A stretch of DNA of 64,000 nt from Monocercomonoides exilis PA203. Lineage: Eukaryota; Protista; Preaxostyla. Shown here in pieces: positions 45,662 through 58,617 of this stretch. The position numbers were made by a program, and so were the translations under genes. The DNA is taken from the NCBI GenBank assembly GCA_001643675.2, contig LSRY02000022.1:1054001-1118000 (forward strand), read 5' to 3'. The notes beneath the pieces were generated by a model that saw only the letters and a list, made by a program, of their open reading frames with translations, made no database searches and had not been told where the DNA came from. The first letter of the stretch is position 1; each line of letters opens with the position of its first letter.

Positions 45662-48600
45662 CGAATATGTTACAAAAATGATTTGTTAATGTTGACATCT
45701 TTTTATGACCTAATTCTTTATTTCTCATAAATTCAAAATGAAATTATGAAATTATTTCTTTTCTTTCTTTCTTCTTCTTCTTCTTCTTCTTCTCTCCTTC
45801 TCTCCTTCTCTTCAGATAGCTGAATATGCTGCGTGGAAGCTGAAAGACACAACAACATTTGAAGGAATAGAAACAACTGTCAAATGCACAACCAGACAAC
45901 GCACTCAAATTCCTCCTTCGCAAATGCCTCAACATTCTCTTTCTTCTCTTTCTCCTCTTTCTCCTCTTTCTTCTTTATCTTCTATGTCTTCTTCTTTATC
46001 TTCTTCTCTTTCTTCTTCTCTTTCTTCTTCTCTTTCTTCTTCTCTTTCTTCTTCTATACCTCCATTTCCTTCAACTCTTCCTTCTTCTTCTTCGTCGTCT
46101 TCTTCTTCTTCTTCTTCTTCATTGAACAAAACTCATTCATTAAACGTTCCTTTTCTTCTTCCTGTTTCTCCTTCTCCTTCTTCTTCTTCTTCTTCTTCTT
46201 CTCTTTCTTCTTCTCTTCGCTTCCCTCTCCAATCTTCAATTCATTCTTCTCTTCCTCCTCCTTCTCTTCCTTTTTCTCATCCTTCTATGATTAATCCATT
46301 ATTTCCTCCTCAAGTATCTTCTTCTCTTCCTTCTTCTTCTTCTCTTCCTCCTCCATTTCTTTCTCCTATTCATCTCTCTCTTCCTCCTCAAATACCACAA
46401 GCAATATCTTCTTATTTGCCCCAATCTATTCCTCCTTCTCTTTCTCCTTCTTCTCTTTCTCCTTCTTCTCTTTCTCCTCCTTCTCTTTCTCCTTCTTCTC
46501 TTTCTCTTTCATCTCCTTCTCGTCCTCCTCCATCATCAACACAACCCATCCTTCATCACTTCCTCGCCCCTCCTTCTTCTCCTTCCTCTTCTCTTTCTCC
46601 TCCTTCTCATATTCCTCCTTCTTCAACACAGAATGTGATGAATGCAACTCCTGAACTTCCATTTCGCACTCTTCTTTCTCTTCAACCTCCTCCTCCACTG
46701 TTGAATAAAACTATATCTTTTACCTCTCCTTCTTCTTCCTCTTCCTCTTCCTCTTCCTTTTCTCCTTCTCCTTCCTCTTCTTCTTCTTCTTCTTCAAAAA
46801 CTTCTTCAATTATTCATTCATCATCATCTTCTTCTTCTTCTCTTCCTTCTTCTTTGTCATCTCCATCATTATTGCCTTCTTCTCCTTCTTCTCAATCATC
46901 ATCAACTTCTTCTTCTTCTTCTACTACTTTTATTTCTCCGATTTCTTCTTCTATTTCTCCGATAACCTCCTCCTCATCATCATCTAATTCTTCTTCTTCT
47001 TCCTCCTCTTCCTCTTCTTCCTCTTCCTCTTCTCATCCACAACTCCTTCCTCATCCATTCATAACCCATTTTACCTCTTCTTATTCAAATGATCAACATC
47101 TTTGCCAATCTTCTCGTATTGTGCCTCATTCACCGCATTCTCCTCATTCTCTTCGTTCTTCTTCTTCTTCTCATTCTCCTCATTCTAATCACAAAATTCA
47201 TTCTAATCATTCAGATCATCCAATAAATTCAATTAATTCAATTAATTCATCTCGTTCTCCTCATTCAAATCATTCACAACGTTCTCCTCATTCAAGCCAT
47301 TCGCCACATTCTTCTCATTCCTCTCATTCTTCTCATTCAATTGATTCAAAACATTCAAATAACTCCTCTAATGTTATTCATTCAAGCAATTCTAATCAAT
47401 CTATTCAATCTATTCAGTCATCGCAATTGACTCAATTGACTCAATTGACTCATTCACCACATTCCAATCATTCCAATCAATCAACACACTTGATTCAGCA
47501 AAATCAGTTGTTTAATTCTAACTCATTTAATCAATCAAATCAATCAAATCAATCAAATCAGTTGTTTAAACATAACCAGCCATCACATTCTAATCCGTTA
47601 AGCAATTCTTCTCAATTTAGTAATTCTTCTCATTCTTCTCGTTCTTCTCATCTGTTGCAATCTTCTAATGATTCTTCTCCTTCTTCTTCTTCTTCTTCTT
47701 CTTCTTCTTCTTCTCCTTCTTCTTCTTCTTCCTCTTCCTCTTCCTCCTCTCCTTCTTCTCTTTCTCTTCATCCTCCTTCTTTATTGTTTGCTCCTCCATC
47801 TAAATGTCTGAAGCAAAAACACGATAATTCTGTGACTTCATCATCATCTTCTTCTTCCTCTTCTTCTTCTCCTTCCTCTTCTTCTTCTTCTTCTTCAATT
47901 ATTCCTTCGTCATCATCTTCTTCCTCTTCTTCTTCTTCTCTTTCTTATTCTTCTCTTTCTTCTCTCTCCTCTGACTGTCTTTCTCCTCATGAGGTTATCA
48001 CAAATTCTTTCGTTCCTTCTTCTTCTACTGCTACAATTTCTTCTTTGTCTTCTTCTTCTTCCTCTTCTTCCTCCTCCTCTTCTTCTTCTTCTTCTTCTCT
48101 TTCTTCTTCTCTTTCTTCTTCACTTTCTTCTTCGTTTTCTTCCTCCTCCTCCTCTTCTTCTTCTTCTTCTTCTCTTTCCTCAATTTCTTCTCATTCATCT
48201 CATTCACCTCATTCACCTCACACACCGATATCTTCTTCTTCTTCTTCTTCTTCCATTCATTCTTCTCTTCCTCTTTCTTCTTCCTCTCCTCCTCCTTCCA
48301 CATCCAATTCTAATTCTAATTCTTCTTCTTCTTCTTCTCTTCCTCTTTCTCATCCTCTTTCTCCTCCTCTTTCTCTCCCTCTCTCCCTCCCTCTTTCTCT
48401 TCCTTCTTCTCTTCCTCTTTCGAATTCTCCTTCTCTCCGTTCTTCTCTTCGTTCTTCTCCTCCTCTTTCTTCTCCTTCTCTTTCTTCTCATTCCATCGAT
48501 CTCTCTTTCTCTGTGCCCGCCAGCCCTCCTCCTGACTCCCTTCTCCTTCCAACTGATATTCTTTGCTCTTCTTCTTCCTCTTCCTCTTCCTCTTCTTTTA

Positions 48601-48776
48601 ATTCTTCTTCCTCTTCTTCCTCTTCAATTTCCTCTTCCTCTTCTAATCCTAATCCTAATTCTTGTTTGAATCTGAATTTAGATCTAAATTTGAATTTGAA
48701 TTTGAATTTGAATGACATTTCTTCTCTTCCTCTTTTTTCTTCTCCAATGACTTCTTCTTCTTCCTCCTCTTCCTCC

Positions 48777-48811
<35 letters not shown>

Positions 48812-49018
48812 CTCTTTCTCCTCCTCCTCTTCTTCTTCTTCTTCTTCCACCATCTTCTCCTCTGCCTCCACCTCTCCTCTTCATCCTTCTCTTTATTCTC
48901 CTCTTTCTCTCAGCCCTCTTTTGGATGTTTCATATTCCATGCCTCTCACACTTGATTCTACCCCTCCTCCTCCTCCTTCTTCTTCTTTTTCTTCCTCTTC
49001 TTCTTCTTCTTCTTCCTT

Positions 49019-49051
<33 letters not shown>

Positions 49052-49385
49052 TTCCTCTTCCTCTTCCTCTTCCTCTTCCTCTTTTTCTCCTTCTCCTTCT
49101 CCCTTTTCTGAGTTTTCTGAGTTTTCAGAGTTGTCTTTGAATGACTGCTGCTTTTGGGAAGCGGAGAATGAAGAAGAAATTAATATTGCTGTTAATTCTT
49201 CTTCTTCCTCTTCCTCCTCCTCCTCCTCCTCTTCCTCCTCTTCCAATATTTCTGATTCTATTGTTGATTATGATAAAGTCAATATAAATACAAATAATAA
49301 TAATAATAATAATACTTCTAATGCAAATCATCCATGTTCTTCTAATTCTTCTGATCCTGAAAATGCTAAGTTCCATAGTATGATC

Positions 49386-49418
<33 letters not shown>

Positions 49419-50306
49419 CATACAAGCATTGCATCAACACTTAACACACTTTCTAATCATTCTTCTCCTTCTCCTTCTTCTTCTTCTTCTTCTTCTACTT
49501 TTCCTTCTCTTTCCTTTCACAAAGATATTCATATTTCTCAATTGAATGAAATAAGTCAACATGAGGAGGAAAAGGAAAAAGAGGCGGAGGAAGAGAAAAA
49601 TGAGAAGAAAGTAGAAGAAAAAGAGAAGGAAAATGAAAATGAAAAAGAGAAGAAAGAAGAAGAGATAGAAAAAGTTGAAAAAAAAACCGAAATTCAATCA
49701 GAAGTGAATGTTTCAAACAAAACATCGGGAGAAGAAGAAGAAGAAGAAGATAAAGACAAAGAATTAATAAACGTCAAAGATGAAAAAGAAGAAGAAGAAG
49801 AAGAAGAAGAAGAAGAAAGGAAAGAAAATAAAGAAAACAGAGAAGAAAATAAAGAGAATAAAGAAGAAAATAAAGAAAATAAAGAAGAAGAAGAAGAAGA
49901 TCCGTTTTGGGAGCTATTTCCTCGGAATGTGTGTGTTCACAGGGCAGGCAAGCGCAGACAGCAAGGAAGACGTTCTATTTCTCCGAACCGATTGGGATTT
50001 CGGAGAAATTCGGAGAGAGAAGGGAGAGAAGGAAAAGAAGGGAGAGAAAGAGAAGAGGAAGAGGGAAAAGAAAGAGAAAGAGAAAGAGAAAGAGAAAGAG
50101 AAAGAGGAGGAAAGGAAGAGAAAGGAAGAGAAGAAGAGGAAGAAAATGGAGAAGGAGTAAGAGAGGGAGAAGGAGAAGGAAGGGAAATAGAATTTGAAGG
50201 AGAAGGAAATTTCAGCAAGGGATGTGAGGGGTTGTTGAATGAGGTGGAGAAAATGATGGAAAGAGGAACATTTACGGAAGAGAAGAAGGTTGATTGCTTG
50301 TGTTGA
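44596..50306 (+). CDS. RRM-domain protein with very long Ser/Pro/His-rich and Glu/Lys-rich tail, 3 exons
   Basis: Exons 44596-44635, 44688-45517 and 45816-50306 join in phase. RNP1-like TGFVTYESLEDAQK follows LSNQFLRFGKIREC, and a second RRM-like segment reads YYASVEF..IAEYAAWKL..FEG..VKC. Confidence 0.7.
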
Positions 50307-51688
50307 AGAAGGATATTTGAATAAAAAAGAGAGAAAGAATGAAAGTGAAGAAGAAAGAAAGAGAAAGAGAAAGAGAAAGAGAAAGAGAAAGAGAAAGAGA
50401 AAGAGAAAGAGAAAGAGAAACAAAGGAAAAGATAATCTGAGTGAGCAGCTGTTCTTTGCTGTTTTTGGCGGATATGCAGAAATAATGAAATTGCAGTAGA
50501 ATGTTAAACAAATATTATTATATATTATGGCATTATATTTGTTTGTTGGTTTGTTTTCTTTAATTTATCAAAATGTGAATCATCGTAAGAGTCATATAGA
50601 TTTGTGCACTTGACAACACCAGGAAAAATGAATTATTTTATTTTATTTTTTATTTATTTTTTTCAACTCAGTATTAGACGAATAAATTCTTGTGCATGTT
50701 TTTCAATTTTTACTGAATGAATGATAGTCTTATTTGCATTGTTTCAATGATAGACTTGCTTGTTTATTCAGAATAGTTTTTTATATATTCGCGTTTTATT
50801 TTAAATAATACATCCTATTTTCCAAATCTTTTTTGATTAGTATTCAAGATTGATTTTTCTTTAATAATATTATACAATTAATTTCTCTGTATTTTTTCCT
50901 AATTTGCAACACTTTTTATTATTTTGAAATTGAATGCAATTTTATGAAGTTGTTTGTTCCTTCTTTTTTTCATTTTGTTTTTGTTTCTCTCATTTTCAAA
51001 TATTGCATGTTTATCACATTGATTCAAATAACAATTATTGCACAAATAGAGTGAGAATAGCTTGAATTTTCGGAATGTTTGGTGCGAGCAAGTTAAATTT
51101 TATTTGATTTTTCAGACATCTTTAAACATTCTGATGTGAAACAATGCAGGATTTGAAAATGTGCTGATTTAGACAATTCTGTGAAATTAATACACATTTC
51201 TTCTTAATGTGACGCCTTGCTTTTCTAATGAGAAAAAAAGACAAGTTTTGCACTCATAATAAAGTCCACAAAGATGGTTGTTCCTTTTTGTGGATAATTC
51301 AAGTTTGAAAATGAAACCACCAGAGCACATGTTGGAAGTTTGGTGTTGTTATTGTGCTTTGCATCTGGCAATTTGATTTGCACAATGGATGTGATTTCAA
51401 CTTCCATTTTCCTCGTTTCAACAAATTTGTTTGTTGCAGCAAAACTGATGGATGCAGTTCGAGCCAATGCCAGACGAACTGGAAAGCATGTCAGATGTTT
51501 CAGTAAGACATTTCATCATTTTGTTGTTGTTTTGTTTTTTCAGAAAAGTTTGATGAGATTAAGCGATCTGAAGAAAATGTCCAAATTCAAAGCATTGAAG
51601 AGTTTTTTGCTCTTCTTGAGCATGGCGATGATAAAACGGTGAAATCCGCAATATCTTATATGGTTTTTATTAGGAAAGAAAATCGAAT

Positions 51689-51726
51689 ATCAATTCCTTC
51701 TCTTATAATTGAGAACCACGATCTAT
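51689..51726. repeat. DIRS inverted terminal repeat (element 3' end)
   Basis: ATCAATTCCTTCTCTTATAATTGAGAACCACGATCTAT, the perfect 38-bp reverse complement of 56259-56296. Confidence 0.95.
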
Positions 51727-51953
51727 GGGTAGTCGCCCGTGAGGATCAAGGTTGTGAAATGGTGGAAAATTCTGAAATGCAATCGACAATTTCACAACAA
51801 CTTAACCATAAACCAACAATTGGATAAAAAACGAGCTAACCAACTGAACAAGCGTTATCACATACTTTATTAACGCTTAGAAAAGGAATAAACAAGAACA
51901 CCATAACTCGAAACACTTGTTTACATTGGTGGGAGTGAAACGGTGGTGGGCCA

Positions 51954-52056
51954 AAGAGAAGGAATTGATATTCGATTTTCTTTCCTAATAAAAGTGCATA
52001 AGCACCTTTATTGTCAAGAAAATCTTCAATCAATTCCTTCTCTTATAATTGAGAAC
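51954..52056. repeat. DIRS internal complementary region (ICR)
   Basis: 103 bp that are the exact reverse complement of 56269-56338 joined to 51672-51704. It lies just past the YR stop codon. Confidence 0.96.
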
Positions 52057-52061
52057 ACAAG

Positions 52062-55000
52062 TTAATTGGGAGATGATGAGACCATCATCAGAACAGCTTT
52101 CGTGATCGTCCTTTGCTTTTCCTCTGATTCCTTCCTTATTTGGGCCCTTGTTCTGATTATGAACTCTTTTACCTGTTCTGGCGGATCTCCTTTTCCTTCA
52201 CTGGGCTCTTCAATCCTTGTAGGCCTCATTGGCTGTTCTTCCCCACTTCTTTGTTCTGCATTCTCTCGTTGACAAATAAAGCTATTGGCTTGTGGTTTAG
52301 TTGTTTTCTCATTTCCGCCTCTCTTCTTTGCTTCGGATCTTCTGTACATGGCTGTGCTGTCTGCATCCTCTCTGTTCGCTCTATCTTCTTGATCGTTTGT
52401 TGCAGAGGCAATAACGCGGGCCATTGATGATGCTAGGTTTGATCGAAAATAATGTTTGACCAACGTGTTTGTTCGTGGTGACAATCTTGCAAACCTTGCC
52501 ACTTGTTCTGGGGGAATTCCTGCCATCGTCAGTGTTGAAAGGCTTGCTGCTTTGATCGAGTATGGTGTGAATCTCTTGGGCACTCCTGCATCATAAATCG
52601 CTTCCTTTGCGAGCTTCCGAATTCCTTCTACAGCTAACGGATGAAAGTTCTCTGTGTTAAGAAGCAATTTGTCTGTGTGACTGTTTTTCTCTTGGACTTT
52701 TTTCCACAATTCCTGGATCGCTGATGCGGGACAAATCAAACTCAGTTCTGGTAAGAACGGAACAGCAATCTCCGTGCGTGTGTTTGAGGTCTTCAACTTT
52801 GTGTCCAAATACACGCCTTCCTCCTCAAACCTGCTTTCCAACATATTGATCCTCTCGAGCTCCGTGAATCTACAAGCTGAAAACAACATCGTTAGAACAA
52901 TCACTTTCATAGTGAGCTGTTTAAAGCTTAACCCTTCATTTGGTCCCAGGCCAGAAAAGAAATTAAGCACTATTCGAGGATTCCAAATGTCTCCTGTCTT
53001 CTTCTTTCTTGACTTGTCCGTCCTTCGGAACGATCTAAAAAGGGTACGAATAATAGGGATGTCTCCAAGGAAGGAAGAGAATACAATATTGGAGTAAAGC
53101 GATACTGCTGCCCTTGTCAATTGAAGGCAAGTTAACTTCATGCCACCGTTCCTAAGCGATAGAAACACATTTGCACAACATGCGGCCCACTCTTGAATAG
53201 ACTCCGGTATTCTTCCATGTCCACACTCTCTCCATTGTTTTCCAAAATGAGCAAATCCATACAGATACACTCGCCATGTGCTCTTGGATATGCCTGCTCT
53301 GCACTCTTCTGCTAACGAGAAAGGGATTGATTTTTGTTCCAATGCATTCTTCCACCATTGTTCCCCATCGCGTAAGGTGCATTCAGCCAGATTATCCTCA
53401 ATCGACCTGGTGGAAGACTCGCACCTGTCCATTGCATCGATGGACCCTTCCGCAGAACCTCCTTCTGATTCTTCCAAGTCCATTCCAAATGGGGAATGGA
53501 CCTTAACAAGCTCTCCCAATTCTGTCCCTTCCAATTCGGCAGGAGTAATATCACTTGTGCTCTCTCCTGTCGTGCTTTCTGGATCGTCGGAATCACAAGC
53601 GGGATCGGTGGATGAGCTAACACGACTTCGTTCTTCCAGGGAAACATCAGTCCGTCTTCTGCAAGCTGACTTCCTATTCCGCACCATCTTCCCACTTTGC
53701 GATTGTGTTGCGCTGCAAACGCGTCCAGCGTTGGAGCAATGTTTAGTTTCGTCATTATCTTTTCCCATTCTTCGTCCTGCACCTCGTAGTCTCCTGCTCT
53801 CTCCAGTCGTGATAACGCATCTGCTCTTGTGTTCAGTACACCTGGAACATGTGACGCTCTCAACTCTATGCCTAGATCTTGTTTTAGTCTCCATAATTTC
53901 CTCAGCACTGGTCGAAGCTTCTTCCCTGCATTCCATCTGTTTATGTTGAACACCACGGATGTATTGTCCGATCTTAGGTGAAGAAAGGACACGTGATGTT
54001 CCTGAAGGATTGGTGAGAAGTGGCTCAGAGCAAGAAATACTGCCATTAGTTCCCTGAAATTGGATGATTGCTTTCTCACTCTGTGGGGGAACGGATTGTG
54101 CGCATCGAGGAGCTGGTTGTTCAAGAGGAGCGAAGCTCCCCAAGCCGTCTCCGATGCATCTGTTGTAAGAGTTGCATCCGGGGAAAATACTGGGATAAGT
54201 CTGCGACTTGGGTGTGCTCTCAACTTCGATATCCATTGCCGAATCTGTTGCAGGATTGACGCATTCAACCTCAATTTGCCTTTCCATCCTCTTTCCTTTA
54301 TTCCTTTCTGGAGCATACGATGCATGGAGTGAAGCCATAGAGAAGCGTCTGGCTGAACAAACCGAACAGCATTGAGTTTTCCAATAAAGGAAGCCAGATC
54401 TTTCACTTTCACAATTCTTGCTTTTACACAATCCTTTTCCCATCTGCGACACAAGCGAGTCAGTGCTTCTTTTCTGTCTCTTGCAAGCCGAACCTTCATC
54501 TTCGACGAGTCCCACTCGAAGCCAAGGAAAGAAAACCTTCTTCTTGGTGTCAACTGGCTTTTCTCCTGGTTCACCAAAAGACCTAATTCCTCCAGAAACC
54601 TGATAATCTCTTTGGCGGCCTGTGCTAAGAATTCCTTGTTCTCGTGTAATATAAGGAAATCGTCCAAATATGCGATTACCCGAACATCCCATCGTTTCCT
54701 GATTTCTGAAGTCACCTTCCTCATCGCGTGCGTGAAAACTCTTGGGGCGTCTACGAAACCAAACGGCATTCCTCTGAATGTGTAGTCTTTTCCAGAAAAT
54801 CTGAAAGCCAAATATGGTCTTAGGTCTTTGGAAACCGGAAGCAGATAGTAGGCCTGTTGCAAATCCACTGAGACTGCGTAATCTTTTCTTCTCAGCACAC
54901 GCTCTACTGTCTTTTCGTTGTCGCATTTGAAGTGCGTCTTTATCAAGGCAGCGTTCAATCTCCGGCAATCCAGTATCTGCCTCCATGCTCCCGATTTCTT

Positions 55001-55367
55001 TCTGATCAAAAACACGTTGTTCCTGTGCCTCACCTCCTCTGACCTTATCTCCTCCACAATTCCTGTCTCTATCTGTTCCTGCAGAAGATCTGCGAACACC
55101 TTTCTTTGATCTTCGTTTGAGTGAACGGCTCCATCTCTGAACGGCATATCCCTTAGCTTCATTCTCATATGTTTGCTTTTCCACATCGCCTGCACGCCCT
55201 GTTTTATCAACTTGGCACCACCAATTCTTTCCCAAGCCTCTATGAAAAACTCCGTTCTTCCTCCAATCCTTGTCCTGCCCATGACTCCTTTCCTCGCTCC
55301 ATCTCCCCTCTCTATTGTTGACCCCGACTTCGGCTGTAGTATCTCCAGTTCGTTGTGGTCCATCCAT
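52062..55367 (-). CDS. DIRS ORF3: tyrosine recombinase (C-terminal domain ~52440-53370) on a long leader overlapping the RT ORF
   Basis: STWRVY, IWNPRIVL, LTMKVIVLTMLFSACRFTEL (catalytic R), TKLKT (K), ICPASAI, FTPYSIKAAS and TLVKHY (Y). Confidence 0.92.
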   Translation of the reverse strand: MDGPQRTGDTTAEVGVNNREGRWSEERSHGQDKDWRKNGVFHRGLGKNWWCQVDKTGRAGDVEKQTYENEAKGYAVQRWSRSLKRRSKKGVRRSSAGTDRDRNCGGDKVRGGEAQEQRVFDQKEIGSMEADTGLPEIERCLDKDALQMRQRKDSRACAEKKRLRSLSGFATGLLSASGFQRPKTIFGFQIFWKRLHIQRNAVWFRRRPKSFHARDEEGDFRNQETMGCSGNRIFGRFPYITREQGILSTGRQRDYQVSGGIRSFGEPGEKPVDTKKKVFFPWLRVGLVEDEGSACKRQKRSTDSLVSQMGKGLCKSKNCESERSGFLYWKTQCCSVCSARRFSMASLHASYAPERNKGKRMERQIEVECVNPATDSAMDIEVESTPKSQTYPSIFPGCNSYNRCIGDGLGSFAPLEQPAPRCAQSVPPQSEKAIIQFQGTNGSISCSEPLLTNPSGTSRVLSSPKIGQYIRGVQHKQMECREEASTSAEEIMETKTRSRHRVESVTCSRCTEHKSRCVITTGESRRLRGAGRRMGKDNDETKHCSNAGRVCSATQSQSGKMVRNRKSACRRRTDVSLEERSRVSSSTDPACDSDDPESTTGESTSDITPAELEGTELGELVKVHSPFGMDLEESEGGSAEGSIDAMDRCESSTRSIEDNLAECTLRDGEQWWKNALEQKSIPFSLAEECRAGISKSTWRVYLYGFAHFGKQWRECGHGRIPESIQEWAACCANVFLSLRNGGMKLTCLQLTRAAVSLYSNIVFSSFLGDIPIIRTLFRSFRRTDKSRKKKTGDIWNPRIVLNFFSGLGPNEGLSFKQLTMKVIVLTMLFSACRFTELERINMLESRFEEEGVYLDTKLKTSNTRTEIAVPFLPELSLICPASAIQELWKKVQEKNSHTDKLLLNTENFHPLAVEGIRKLAKEAIYDAGVPKRFTPYSIKAASLSTLTMAGIPPEQVARFARLSPRTNTLVKHYFRSNLASSMARVIASATNDQEDRANREDADSTAMYRRSEAKKRGGNEKTTKPQANSFICQRENAEQRSGEEQPMRPTRIEEPSEGKGDPPEQVKEFIIRTRAQIRKESEEKQRTITKAVLMMVSSSPN
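53312..55363 (-). CDS. DIRS ORF2: reverse transcriptase - RNase H - adenine methyltransferase-like domain, 683 aa
   Basis: RT: WRQILDCRRLN, VDLQQAY, MPFG, AYLDD, FLG. RNase H: LTTDASETAWGA, SNFREL, RSDNTSV, HVPGVLNTRADALSR. MT-like: LDAFA, DGLMFPW, AHPPIP, LLLPNW. Confidence 0.96.
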   Translation of the reverse strand: MDHNELEILQPKSGSTIERGDGARKGVMGRTRIGGRTEFFIEAWERIGGAKLIKQGVQAMWKSKHMRMKLRDMPFRDGAVHSNEDQRKVFADLLQEQIETGIVEEIRSEEVRHRNNVFLIRKKSGAWRQILDCRRLNAALIKTHFKCDNEKTVERVLRRKDYAVSVDLQQAYYLLPVSKDLRPYLAFRFSGKDYTFRGMPFGFVDAPRVFTHAMRKVTSEIRKRWDVRVIAYLDDFLILHENKEFLAQAAKEIIRFLEELGLLVNQEKSQLTPRRRFSFLGFEWDSSKMKVRLARDRKEALTRLCRRWEKDCVKARIVKVKDLASFIGKLNAVRFVQPDASLWLHSMHRMLQKGIKERGWKGKLRLNASILQQIRQWISKLRAHPSRRLIPVFSPDATLTTDASETAWGASLLLNNQLLDAHNPFPHRVRKQSSNFRELMAVFLALSHFSPILQEHHVSFLHLRSDNTSVVFNINRWNAGKKLRPVLRKLWRLKQDLGIELRASHVPGVLNTRADALSRLERAGDYEVQDEEWEKIMTKLNIAPTLDAFAAQHNRKVGRWCGIGSQLAEDGLMFPWKNEVVLAHPPIPLVIPTIQKARQERAQVILLLPNWKGQNWESLLRSIPHLEWTWKNQKEVLRKGPSMQWTGASLPPGRLRIIWLNAPYAMGNNGGRMHWNKNQSLSR

Positions 55368-56247
55368 CTCTCTGCCGCTTTCCTTCTCGTGTTGCCTGTG
55401 AGCGGGGTCCTCTCCGAAAAAACTGTGAGCCCCAGATCTTTCTTGGGCCAGTGTAATTTCTTCTTGGAAGCCCCTGTGTTGCAGAGCTCCTCTCTCCTTT
55501 AGACCATAAGGAACTTGTTGACTTTCTGCTCGTTACTTTAACGGGGGTTGAGGAGCTTGTCGCTAATCTTGTCTCCTTTAAAATCTGCTCCTGGCGTTCG
55601 GTTAATAATCCCGTCACATTTTCTGATTTCATTTGCTCCGCCATCCGAAAACCAAATCTTCCTTGCAGCCTGGTTGTTCTCGCCTCCTGCAATGCCTTCG
55701 CTATAAGCAGTAACGCGTCAGCTCCCCTTTGTGCACTTTCCCGATGAGGGTCTGAGTCAGCCAAGCTCAGAAGCTGAGCCTTGAAAGCCTGATACAAACA
55801 CAGCTCTATTCTATAACCCGCGGAATCCAACGCATCATTAAACCAATTGGCCGATTTTTGGAAGGGGGGAGGCGCTGGCTGCAATACTGGGCTTAGATCC
55901 TGAAGCGCGTATTCTTGTTCAATACTTTCTATTGAAAAGGCAGGAAGTTGAAGATCAAAAATGGATCTATTTGGTTCCTGACCGAAAATGCTATTAAAAA
56001 CGTCAGCAGCCCTTTCGTGCAAGTCTGAGTCTGTTTCTTCTTCTGTGCTCTTTTCTTCGGTTGCTCTTGCCTCTGTTTCCGGAGGACTTGATTGAGAAGA
56101 TACCGACGCAGAAGAAGGAATTGGTGGAAGGAGCGTTTGGACCCCAAGCTGGCTTTGCACCCCACCTGGCAGTGAGGCTGCTTCGGTTGCCGGTGTAAGT
56201 CCAGTTGTCTGCGGGAAAAATGGTGATTGCATCATGAATTCGATCAT
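55312..56247 (-). CDS. DIRS ORF1, gag-like (about 311 aa from the first ATG inside the element)
   Basis: First ORF after the 5' ITR, overlapping the starts of ORF2 and ORF3. The call is positional, with no diagnostic motif. The ORF-track extension to 56583 runs into host DNA. Confidence 0.75.
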   Translation of the reverse strand: MIEFMMQSPFFPQTTGLTPATEAASLPGGVQSQLGVQTLLPPIPSSASVSSQSSPPETEARATEEKSTEEETDSDLHERAADVFNSIFGQEPNRSIFDLQLPAFSIESIEQEYALQDLSPVLQPAPPPFQKSANWFNDALDSAGYRIELCLYQAFKAQLLSLADSDPHRESAQRGADALLLIAKALQEARTTRLQGRFGFRMAEQMKSENVTGLLTERQEQILKETRLATSSSTPVKVTSRKSTSSLWSKGERSSATQGLPRRNYTGPRKIWGSQFFRRGPRSQATREGKRQRDGWTTTNWRYYSRSRGQQ

Positions 56248-56258
56248 GGTGACTTCGA

Positions 56259-56296
56259 ATAGATCGTGGTTCTCAATTATAAGAGAAGGAATTGAT
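56259..56296. repeat. DIRS inverted terminal repeat (element 5' end)
   Basis: Perfect 38-bp reverse complement of 51689-51726. Confidence 0.95.
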
Positions 56297-58617
56297 TGAA
56301 GATTTTCTTGACAATAAAGGTGCTTATGCACTTTTATTGAAATCAACGATGCAATTGAAAACGGGCACTTGTGTTTGGAGAATTCGATTTTATTGCTCAA
56401 GCGGATTGGCTTTTGCAAATTACTCAACTGCATGTGGATTTTTGAATACGACGAATGCACTTTGCACAAAAGATTCGAAAAGTTGGTGCTGGAAGAAGAA
56501 AACAAGAAAGGGGAAAAGAACGAAAAGCTGATGATCGACCTTTGTGAATGCTTTCTTGCTTTGTTTGAAGGAATTCCAGACACATCAAAGGATGCAGTTG
56601 CTATTAGTGTCCGTTGTGTGATGAAGGCTGCAATGAGTAAAGAGGAGGATGAGAAAACTCAAAAAGAAGTGGAAATGGCCTTGCTTGCTTTGAGCAATGC
56701 AAAATATTTTGATGTGTGAAAGTTTGTTCATTGATTCAATAATTCGTTTGTTGGTTTGTTGTCTTTTGAATAGTGTGACAACAGGGTTCAATTCCTTGAT
56801 GAAAGTGCTGAAATCATCAAATATCACCAGGAGCATCACAACCTCACCAGACTTGCGTATCAATCTGCTTGGTGTTCCATTGTTAGTCAGGCAAGCAATG
56901 ACGAGAAAATGGGGAAAACGGTTGAAAATGAACTGAATTTTTGCAAAGAGGCAGAAAGAGAATTGGATGAGCTGTTGAGGTGTGTGAATTGGAGGAAAAA
57001 TGAAAAGGAGATAGATGAAAATTTTGAGGTTCGCCTGATGAAAAGATGGCTTCGAATAATCAACGCATATTTCTTCAAAAACACTTTGAGAGGAGATGAG
57101 GTTTTGAGGCTGATTGCATGTGTTGTGAGACTTTGTCAAACTGTTAAGAATTCAAGCAAAACAGCCTTTGGGAGTGGAATGTTCATTTTCCAAAAGATAA
57201 TCAGAAGTTGCTTGGGGAACTTTGATTATTTGCTGAGAGGCGGAGCAATGGATTATCTTTTTCAGGAGCTGAGCCAACCGACATTCAGATGTGACACTTT
57301 TGGAGAGTGCATGCAGTTCTTTTCGGATCTGTCAATTGCGTTGCACGGAGAAAAAGTCAACACGAATGTTGAAGATGATGAAAGTGAACATTTGGATGAG
57401 TTTGAATGGGAAGGCGAAGGTGGTCAAGATGATGAATGTGATGAATACGATGATTGCGATGAAAATGGCAAAGAAATTGACAATGACGAAGTGATAAAGG
57501 CCGATGAAACTGAAAAACCCAATGGCACTGATGAGGCAAAGCAAATGTTGATAGAAAGAGTTATTCTGAATAAGTTTGAGGAAAAAGGGTTTGAAGATAT
57601 TATCTTTATCTTCGAAACTTATCTTCCATGGTTAAAGTGTTATTCATTTGCATCAGGCGATGCAAGTGATTATTTCATTAGAAACTGAATCAGGAGATTC
57701 TGTTTGTGGATAGTGATTTTTTGTTTGTGTCTCATGAGAAGAGCATTCACGTTATCTGTACAGATGAGTTTGAATCTGAGTTTATTGTTTCATTCATTTA
57801 CATTGTTGATGCATTTTCTTCTTTTGTTTTCCTCTTTTATAATCTGATAATTGTTGATTTCAAGTTGTGTATGTTAAATTATGAAACTCTCTTGAAAGGA
57901 TTGAATTTCATGTTTTCAAACAAGCAGTTCACAAAATGAGAGAATAGGAAATTCATTTTTTTTTTTAATTTCAACATTGAACAATTATTTTTGTATTACA
58001 GCTTTCTTTTGGCTTTTATTCACAAAGTTTGTAGAAAATCTGAAAAATAAATGACTGCTCTATTCTTAAAAAAGAAATCAAAAAATTGAACGAAAAAAGA
58101 TTTGATTGTTTGGCAACACAATGAGTTCATTTGAAAAATGAAGATAATTCTGTGTGGACGATATTTGCACACAACGAATATCTTTCCTTACACAAAAAAT
58201 AATGATTGGGAAGAATTAATCAAAAAGGAAAATGTTATTATTTCAAAAAGATATTCTAATAGTGTAAGAAGAGTTTTATTTTGTCTGATATTTGTGATCT
58301 TTTTGTTGCATCAACGATAATTTCGGAATGAAAACTATCGTGCAGTTTTTTGAGTTATCTTTGTTTATTTTTCATTTTTTTTATATTTCACTCATCGAAA
58401 TTATTGTATCATAAATCGTTTTCATTGATTGAAAGCTGACCGGCAATTTTTTATTGATTTTTTGATAAACAGCTTCAGCATTTCTTTCATGATTGAAAAT
58501 CGTTTTTTATTATTATTCTAATTATTGTAAAGAATTTCTTTAATCAAAAGTTTTTTTCTCATTTTTCAAATAAGCTTGATAAGAAAAATGATATAATTCT
58601 GTTTTTATAATGGAATA

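Follow-up and report, generated by a model that had tools for sequence, protein, structure and literature searches.

Conservative insertion of a probable DIRS1-type retrotransposon at a T(T) target in Monocercomonoides exilis, with an apparent seven-base coincidence in one copy

DIRS1-like retrotransposons, with Dictyostelium DIRS-1 as the reference element, carry a gag-like open reading frame (ORF), a second frame for reverse transcriptase (RT), RNase H and methyltransferase, and a tyrosine recombinase whose ORF overlaps the preceding one over a long distance; they end in inverted terminal repeats with one terminal extension, and hold an internal complementary region (ICR) derived from both ends, which overlap there at a short junction. 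No target duplication accompanies them, and an NTT 3-bp "circular junction", its bases common to circle and target, has already been published (PMC3266345, PMC7192593), Table 3 of one survey also containing elements whose start and end trinucleotides differ (PMC3266345). The occurrence of DIRS1-like elements in Excavata was unconfirmed in that survey of 2011 (PMC3266345), and the paper on the nanopore assembly of the oxymonad Monocercomonoides exilis leaves DIRS unmentioned (PMC8767320). Crypton DNA transposons likewise use a tyrosine recombinase and have short terminal direct repeats (4-6 bp) that are recombination substrates and not duplications (PMC3212892), but they are without RT, ICR and inverted terminal repeats, and their repeats are reported to be identical at both ends, whereas the two sides of the element described here usually differ. 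This element lies in a 64,000-nt stretch of M. exilis PA203 (the window; contig LSRY02000022.1 of assembly GCA_001643675.2, positions 1,054,001 to 1,118,000, forward strand), where the interval 51665-56338 in all likelihood contains a full-length and very recent DIRS1-type retrotransposon with its genes on the minus strand. It is like DIRS1-like elements in the features named, methyltransferase and tyrosine recombinase being putative domains here, and its NTT-type junction bases are ATT within TTTTATT. It differs in that the end overlap in the ICR reaches up to 7 nt, only through a chance match of the target, that the obligatory identity is 1-2 nt rather than 3, that the extension forms a conserved, strand-biased hairpin, and that the host is an oxymonad.

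The element proper occupies 51672-56338 and interrupts a coding exon in a member of a host gene family. At its two edges stands the 7-mer TTTTATT (51665-51671 and 56332-56338), and the complement AATAAAA is found once, within the ICR, at 51987-51993; this arrangement had been noted correctly in an original prediction made from the letters of the stretch, which took the 7-mer for a recombination overlap and TTTTATT for the target of the element. The main result of the present analysis is a correction of that view, the 7-bp core being a coincidence of T-rich target preference. Removal of the element together with one 7-mer joins 51543-51671 to 56339-56698 in an uninterrupted host frame (..SAISYMVFIEINDAIENGH..), and the frame breaks if none or two 7-mers are left in the empty site. 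Seven paralogues, from fetched loci or from the window, align across the junction free of gaps and keep the phenylalanine encoded within the 7-mer, the host bases 51665-51671 comprising the last base of a valine codon, the phenylalanine codon and an isoleucine codon. Because the frame is restored and the paralogues align without gaps, the empty site as originally rebuilt is correct, with no host base gained or lost.

A search of the genome (82,301,135 bases in 101 contigs) with both element ends yielded two related subfamilies and, besides older relatives, six copies at 97-100% identity. Full-length copies number about 45 in the three subfamilies; the flank counts, given in window orientation, cover 26 left flanks and 16 pairs, the right-end readings coming from outside subfamily C. 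Subfamily A, to which the window copy belongs, starts at its left end with AGGAAAG and has the ICR core AATAAAA; subfamily B has the left end AGAAAAG and the same core; subfamily C has the left end AAAAAAG and the core AATTAAA. The flanks of these other copies proved to be variable on the left, the outcome that the original prediction had named as telling against it, and to stay TTTTATT on the right. Thirteen of the 16 paired copies have the core TTTTATT as their right 7-mer, and the left 7-mers are diverse (TTTTTTT, CTTTTTT, TTTCTTT, TTTTCTT, ATTCATT, TAACATT, ACATATT, CAATATT, TTGAATT, AAAGTTT and others). What is invariant on the left is the final TT, present in all 26 independent insertions (chance about 4e-25). 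The core is matched 7/7 in only three of the 26 targets, namely those of the window copy, of the copy C17_42 and of one subfamily-C copy, and TTTTATT is not supported as the target sequence.

The pairs fall into classes with a strong bias. The left 7-mer is unlike the core and the right one equal to it in 11 of 16, the reverse occurs in none (0/16), both equal the core in two (the window copy and C17_42), and both are unlike it in three; the 11:0 split between the one-sided classes has a binomial p of 0.001. These figures bear on the possibility that the 7-mer is a target-site duplication left by the staggered cuts of a DDE-type integrase, for which the window copy, taken alone, offers its identical flanking 7-mers. 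Such an integrase leaves identical repeats specific to each copy, but the two flanks differ from each other in 14 of the 16 pairs, the two identical pairs both show the element core, and the right 7-mer is constant and occurs in the ICR. Among the Pfam matches of the element no DDE-type integrase was found, a probable tyrosine recombinase being encoded instead, and at the flanks of the sister copies no duplication beyond the 7-mer was seen. Refuted by these sister copies, a DDE-type duplication is extremely improbable, as the original prediction had also held.

The assignment of the two 7-mers was made clear by a second exon insertion. The subfamily-B copy C17_1206 (contig C17, about 1.206 Mb, loci L019/L047) likewise interrupts a coding exon belonging to this host family. 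The empty-site models, with flanks taken by exact flank strings, were separated by alignment to the family, since the length of a spanning ORF alone, owing to a nearby stop in one paralogue, does not discriminate between them. When the left TAACATT alone is retained, ..LIDFCECYFFVSE.. is regained with the family motif CEC[FY], and the exon is restored in a single alignment block as ..KRFLIDFCECYFFVSE..; with the right TTTTATT alone the reading is CE-stop, and with neither or both the frame is broken. Given this restoration of the frame, the host is the source of the variable 7-mer on the left, and the constant one on the right belongs to the element. The target and the core of C17_1206 have only ATT in common. 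For the window copy it is accordingly most probable that the left TTTTATT is host sequence, identical by coincidence, and that the right TTTTATT is the element's own, copied in the ICR.

Integration is conservative, without target duplication, at T(T), and the element's own 7-mer is always on the same side. As in DIRS1-like elements, there is no target-site duplication, TT is common to junction and target in all cases, and two exon frames are restored exactly. The idea of a recombination overlap fared in part: insertion is conservative and some bases are common to junction and target, but an identical core of 7 bp is contradicted by 23 of the 26 targets. In the form originally proposed, TTTTATT would lie between staggered recombinase cuts and be common to circle and target. 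Its 7 bp fall within the canonical overlap length of 6-8 bp (PMC3212892), the 7/7 identity in the three copies named agrees with it, and the targets of subfamily A are TTTTNTT-like; the strict identity known from the classical lambda, Cre and Flp systems is refuted by the 23 targets unlike the core. A relaxed form tolerating heterology would be expected to give both one-sided pair classes equally, and 11:0 was found; moreover subfamily B, with the same core, has near-background targets, and left position 5 is not enriched, carrying the core's A in 12 of 26 (p = 0.08). An overlap of 7 bp is, taken together, quite unlikely. T at left positions 1-4 amounts to 88% in subfamily A and 47% in subfamily B, which have the same core (Fisher p = 2e-4), and the three exact targets among 26 fit a position-wise T preference. 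The 7/7 identity of the window copy is best read as the upper tail of this T-rich preference.

The limits of the crossover were approached through k, a count of the left-7-mer bases contributed by the target, with 7-mer positions numbered 1-7 in window orientation. Because left 7-mers carry target-type bases at position 5, k is at least 5. Two young subfamily-B copies, in contigs C31 (L046, right 7-mer TTTTATC) and C34 (L052, TTATATC), are relevant here and at the same time count against the reading given above; the adjacent 64-71 nt equal their own ICR exactly, which makes simple mutation an improbable source of these right 7-mers and leaves the crossover without one fixed position. They suggest that in both copies the outermost base may be derived from the target, with k of 5 or 6, in which case C31 would have a single T in common with its target. 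At L053 (contig C20) a right-end 7-mer TTTAATG is seen, its changes confined to the 7-mer as at L046 and L052, and there too the outermost base may be the target's. The crossover likely occurs at or within the last TT of the 7-mer, with k of 5 to 7. The obligatory identity of junction and target, as read from these copies, is 1-2 nt and often 3 (ATT or TTT), which corresponds to the published NTT junction and not to 7 bp.

Some observations count against this reading. The targets are closer to the core than chance would have them (exact 7/7 in three of 26, p = 2e-4) and subfamily A targets average a 5.8/7 match to it, so that the wider 7-mer may have some role. In the window TTTTATT has 78 occurrences on this strand in 64 kb, or about 0.0012 per position, and the identity of the left-flank 7-mer thus goes beyond background chance. 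The right 7-mers of three pairs are odd (ATTTATT in addition to the two given above), and the counts comprise only 26 left flanks and 16 pairs. The assembly is nanopore-based (PMC8767320) and T-run lengths may carry errors, of which the non-homopolymer targets and the two exon insertions are independent. A G follows the right 7-mer in 10 of 21 cases (p = 0.001). An older copy, L007 (contig C17, 42501-42881), has GATAAAA in its ICR and TTTTATT at both flanks; the GATAAAA is probably a mutation that followed insertion.

The structure of the element itself agrees with the DIRS1-like scheme. The left terminus (51672..51737), which is the 3' end in the sense orientation of the element, and the right inverted terminal repeat (56248..56309) pair imperfectly with each other as inverted repeat I2, 51676-51737 against 56248-56309 being 87% complementary over 62 nt. 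These repeats are of the inverted, non-split type of DIRS1-like elements, unlike the split direct repeats of PAT or Ngaro. The ICR (51954..52056), which would serve as template of a circle junction, is an exact reverse complement, over 103 nt, of the right end 56269-56338, with TTTTATT counted once, joined to the left end 51672-51704, so that the junction originally predicted agrees with the ICR at every base. The parts of the ICR are the left end in reverse complement (51954-51986), AATAAAA (51987-51993) and the right end in reverse complement (51994-52056); the first 33 nt of the left terminus recur in it, and an exact 40-nt complement to 51954-51993 is found at the left terminus (inverted repeat I3). 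Both termini are adjacent in the ICR and overlap at a short junction, as in DIRS1-like elements, and subfamilies B and C have the identical layout. Since ICR and termini agree at 103 of 103 positions the window copy is young, and the inverted terminal repeats, single terminal extension and ICR together make the layout DIRS1-type under a published scheme (PMC3266345).

The right extension (56313..56338, plus strand) forms a terminal hairpin, with the stem AATAAAGGTGC at 56313-56323, the loop TTAT at 56324-56327 and the 3' stem GCACTTTTATT at 56328-56338, whose outer portion is the element-borne TTTTATT (56332-56338). One pair of this hairpin is a G.T wobble on the plus strand, which has the polarity of minus-strand cDNA; on the sense strand the pair becomes an A.C mismatch. 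Subfamily C shows a compensating double change, AATTAA/TTAATT, in its ICRs and in one genuine right end. The right 7-mer is one half of a conserved terminal hairpin and covaries with its partner stem. When the complete junction is read from the ICR and folded as single-stranded DNA, a long hairpin of -28.2 kcal/mol results (z = -8.95). Where classical tyrosine-recombinase core sites have inverted binding sites on either side of cleavage sites 6-8 bp apart, the sequence around this junction shows nothing beyond the hairpin and the inverted terminal repeats. A palindrome at L024/L025 (contig C27, 600150-605060) runs from a subfamily-C right end through the 7-mer into an inverted ICR, left module and left host flank. 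It was considered as a tandem or circle junction and rejected as such; right end and ICR are identical in inverted orientation, and the palindrome looks like a rearrangement via that identity.

These data can be placed in a scheme in which the ICR would template the joined element ends, as in the Cappello / Goodwin-Poulter model, and the encoded recombinase would join this junction to the host site, presumably via a circular intermediate. The manner of strand exchange is likewise presumed: a recombinase-type exchange at or inside the last TT, through which the host gains or loses no base, and to which subfamily A adds a preference for T at positions 1-4. The 11:0 split of pair classes argues for an effectively single crossover point. 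CTnDOT, with IntDOT, and Tn916, with its Int, integrate into targets of which only a couple of bases match the element joint, and the 6-7-bp staggered cuts of these systems give rise to heteroduplex coupling sequences, which segregate to one end or the other. After the example of Tn916-type elements, cuts 6-8 bp apart in non-identical sequence would produce heteroduplex at both junctions and, after replication, both pair classes. The M. exilis element is like them in its few matching bases, but differs in being one-sided (11:0), an outcome that one strand exchange resolved by replication would fit.

A single exchange of this sort is familiar from integrons, in which attC x attI recombination uses a folded single-stranded hairpin, with crossover at (G)TT at the stem base, one strand exchange and a deterministic product; integration of the CTX phage likewise exchanges one strand and is resolved by replication. 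The junction fold and TT crossover of the M. exilis element resemble those of attC x attI, and by analogy DIRS integration might proceed as for integron cassettes, with the junction of a single-stranded cDNA circle folded, one strand exchanged with the host at TT at the base of the apical stem, and the resulting Holliday junction resolved by replication. This route is doubtful, but it would account for a deterministic and one-sided outcome, for as little as 1 nt in common in C31, for a junction that folds strongly as single-stranded DNA with its crossover at the base of the apical hairpin, and for pairing that is complete only on the strand of minus-strand cDNA polarity (G.T as against A.C). 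In Dictyostelium, DIRS-1 cDNA intermediates are single-stranded, but linear molecules make up most of that cDNA, and circle junctions failed to amplify there (PMC7192593). Identical products would also arise on double-stranded DNA if a single strand exchange were resolved through replication. Among the papers searched, none links DIRS with attC-type recombination. If true, the integron-like route would explain together why the junctions are one-sided (11:0), why 1-2 nt of identity are enough, why the G.T hairpin is biased to one strand and why the cDNA in Dictyostelium is single-stranded, and almost any host site containing T(T) would be usable.

The coding content, with reading frames taken from the genomic sequence as it stands, is in all probability that of a complete DIRS element, as had been claimed. 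ORF1 (55312..56253, minus strand, 313 aa) is gag-like by position and has no Pfam family match. The pol ORF (53312..55363, minus strand, 683 aa) contains, as DIRS1-like elements do, a reverse transcriptase (54515-55006), with Pfam RVT_1 matched above cut-off at E = 1.4e-29, followed by weak RNase H-like matches (RT_RNaseH_2 at E = 2.8e-5 and a further one at 0.005). A Dam-like methyltransferase match (53510-53731) comes at the expected place after RNase H, with E = 0.0018 when searched alone and 18.4 bits against a cut-off of 28.1. The probable tyrosine-recombinase frame (52062..55367, minus strand, 1101 codons) has its putative catalytic domain at about 52491-52916, where Pfam Phage_integrase is matched with E = 6.2e-6 and 26.5 bits, 0.6 bit short of the curated cut-off of 27.1. 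The translation shows the R, K and Y positions, and in the domain at 52491-52916 YSIK (..RFTPYSIKAAS..) takes the place of the usual HxxR, a motif that is variable among DIRS elements (PMC3266345). A sequence search of the recombinase against solved structures gave no useful match. Its first 700 codons are an alternative frame overlapping pol and have no Pfam match.

The plus-strand exon into which the element inserted comprises an upstream part (51543..51671), ending in the host's own TTTTATT, and a downstream part (56339..56698) that continues its frame when one 7-mer is retained. It has no Pfam match, and the orphan family of which it is a member numbers at least 1573 candidate copies genome-wide; exons of the family also occur in the window at 1976-2456 and at loci L002, L019, L020, L035, L038, L040, L042, L047, L049 and L050. 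At 10 of the 26 DIRS insertion sites a host-family exon lies within 1.5 kb, where about 6.5% would be expected (p = 3e-6); a preference in targeting may lie behind this proximity, or the two may cluster together in permissive regions. A short way upstream of the interrupted exon is an open frame of 1460 aa (45924-50306, plus strand) with no Pfam match, which may be part of the interrupted host gene. Splice sites of the form ttttcag had pointed to a nematode host, a reading rejected since the SL1 leader is absent. Elsewhere in the genome two internally deleted copies, 95-99% identical, were found in contigs C12 (290168-293738, L043) and C17 (353404-356164, L042), with spans from ICR to right end of 3.5 and 2.7 kb versus 4.3 kb at full length; as the match of each to the right-end query begins only at base 222-225, they have a common deletion edge.

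In summary, to propose a 7-bp core and TTTTATT as the target is to read too much into a single fortunate copy, and the mechanism to which the locus belongs is known and not new. To our knowledge, no one has yet reconstituted DIRS integration, and the 3-bp junction on which the accepted model is built was deduced from consensus sequences. In the M. exilis family there are young copies, the empty site is fixed to the base by two insertions in conserved coding exons, and sister copies allow the bases of the element to be told from those of the host. One-sided conservative insertion at one or two T's constrains where and how the strands are exchanged and provides defined substrates for biochemistry, and intact DIRS1-type elements are documented in a metamonad, a setting in which their occurrence had been in doubt.

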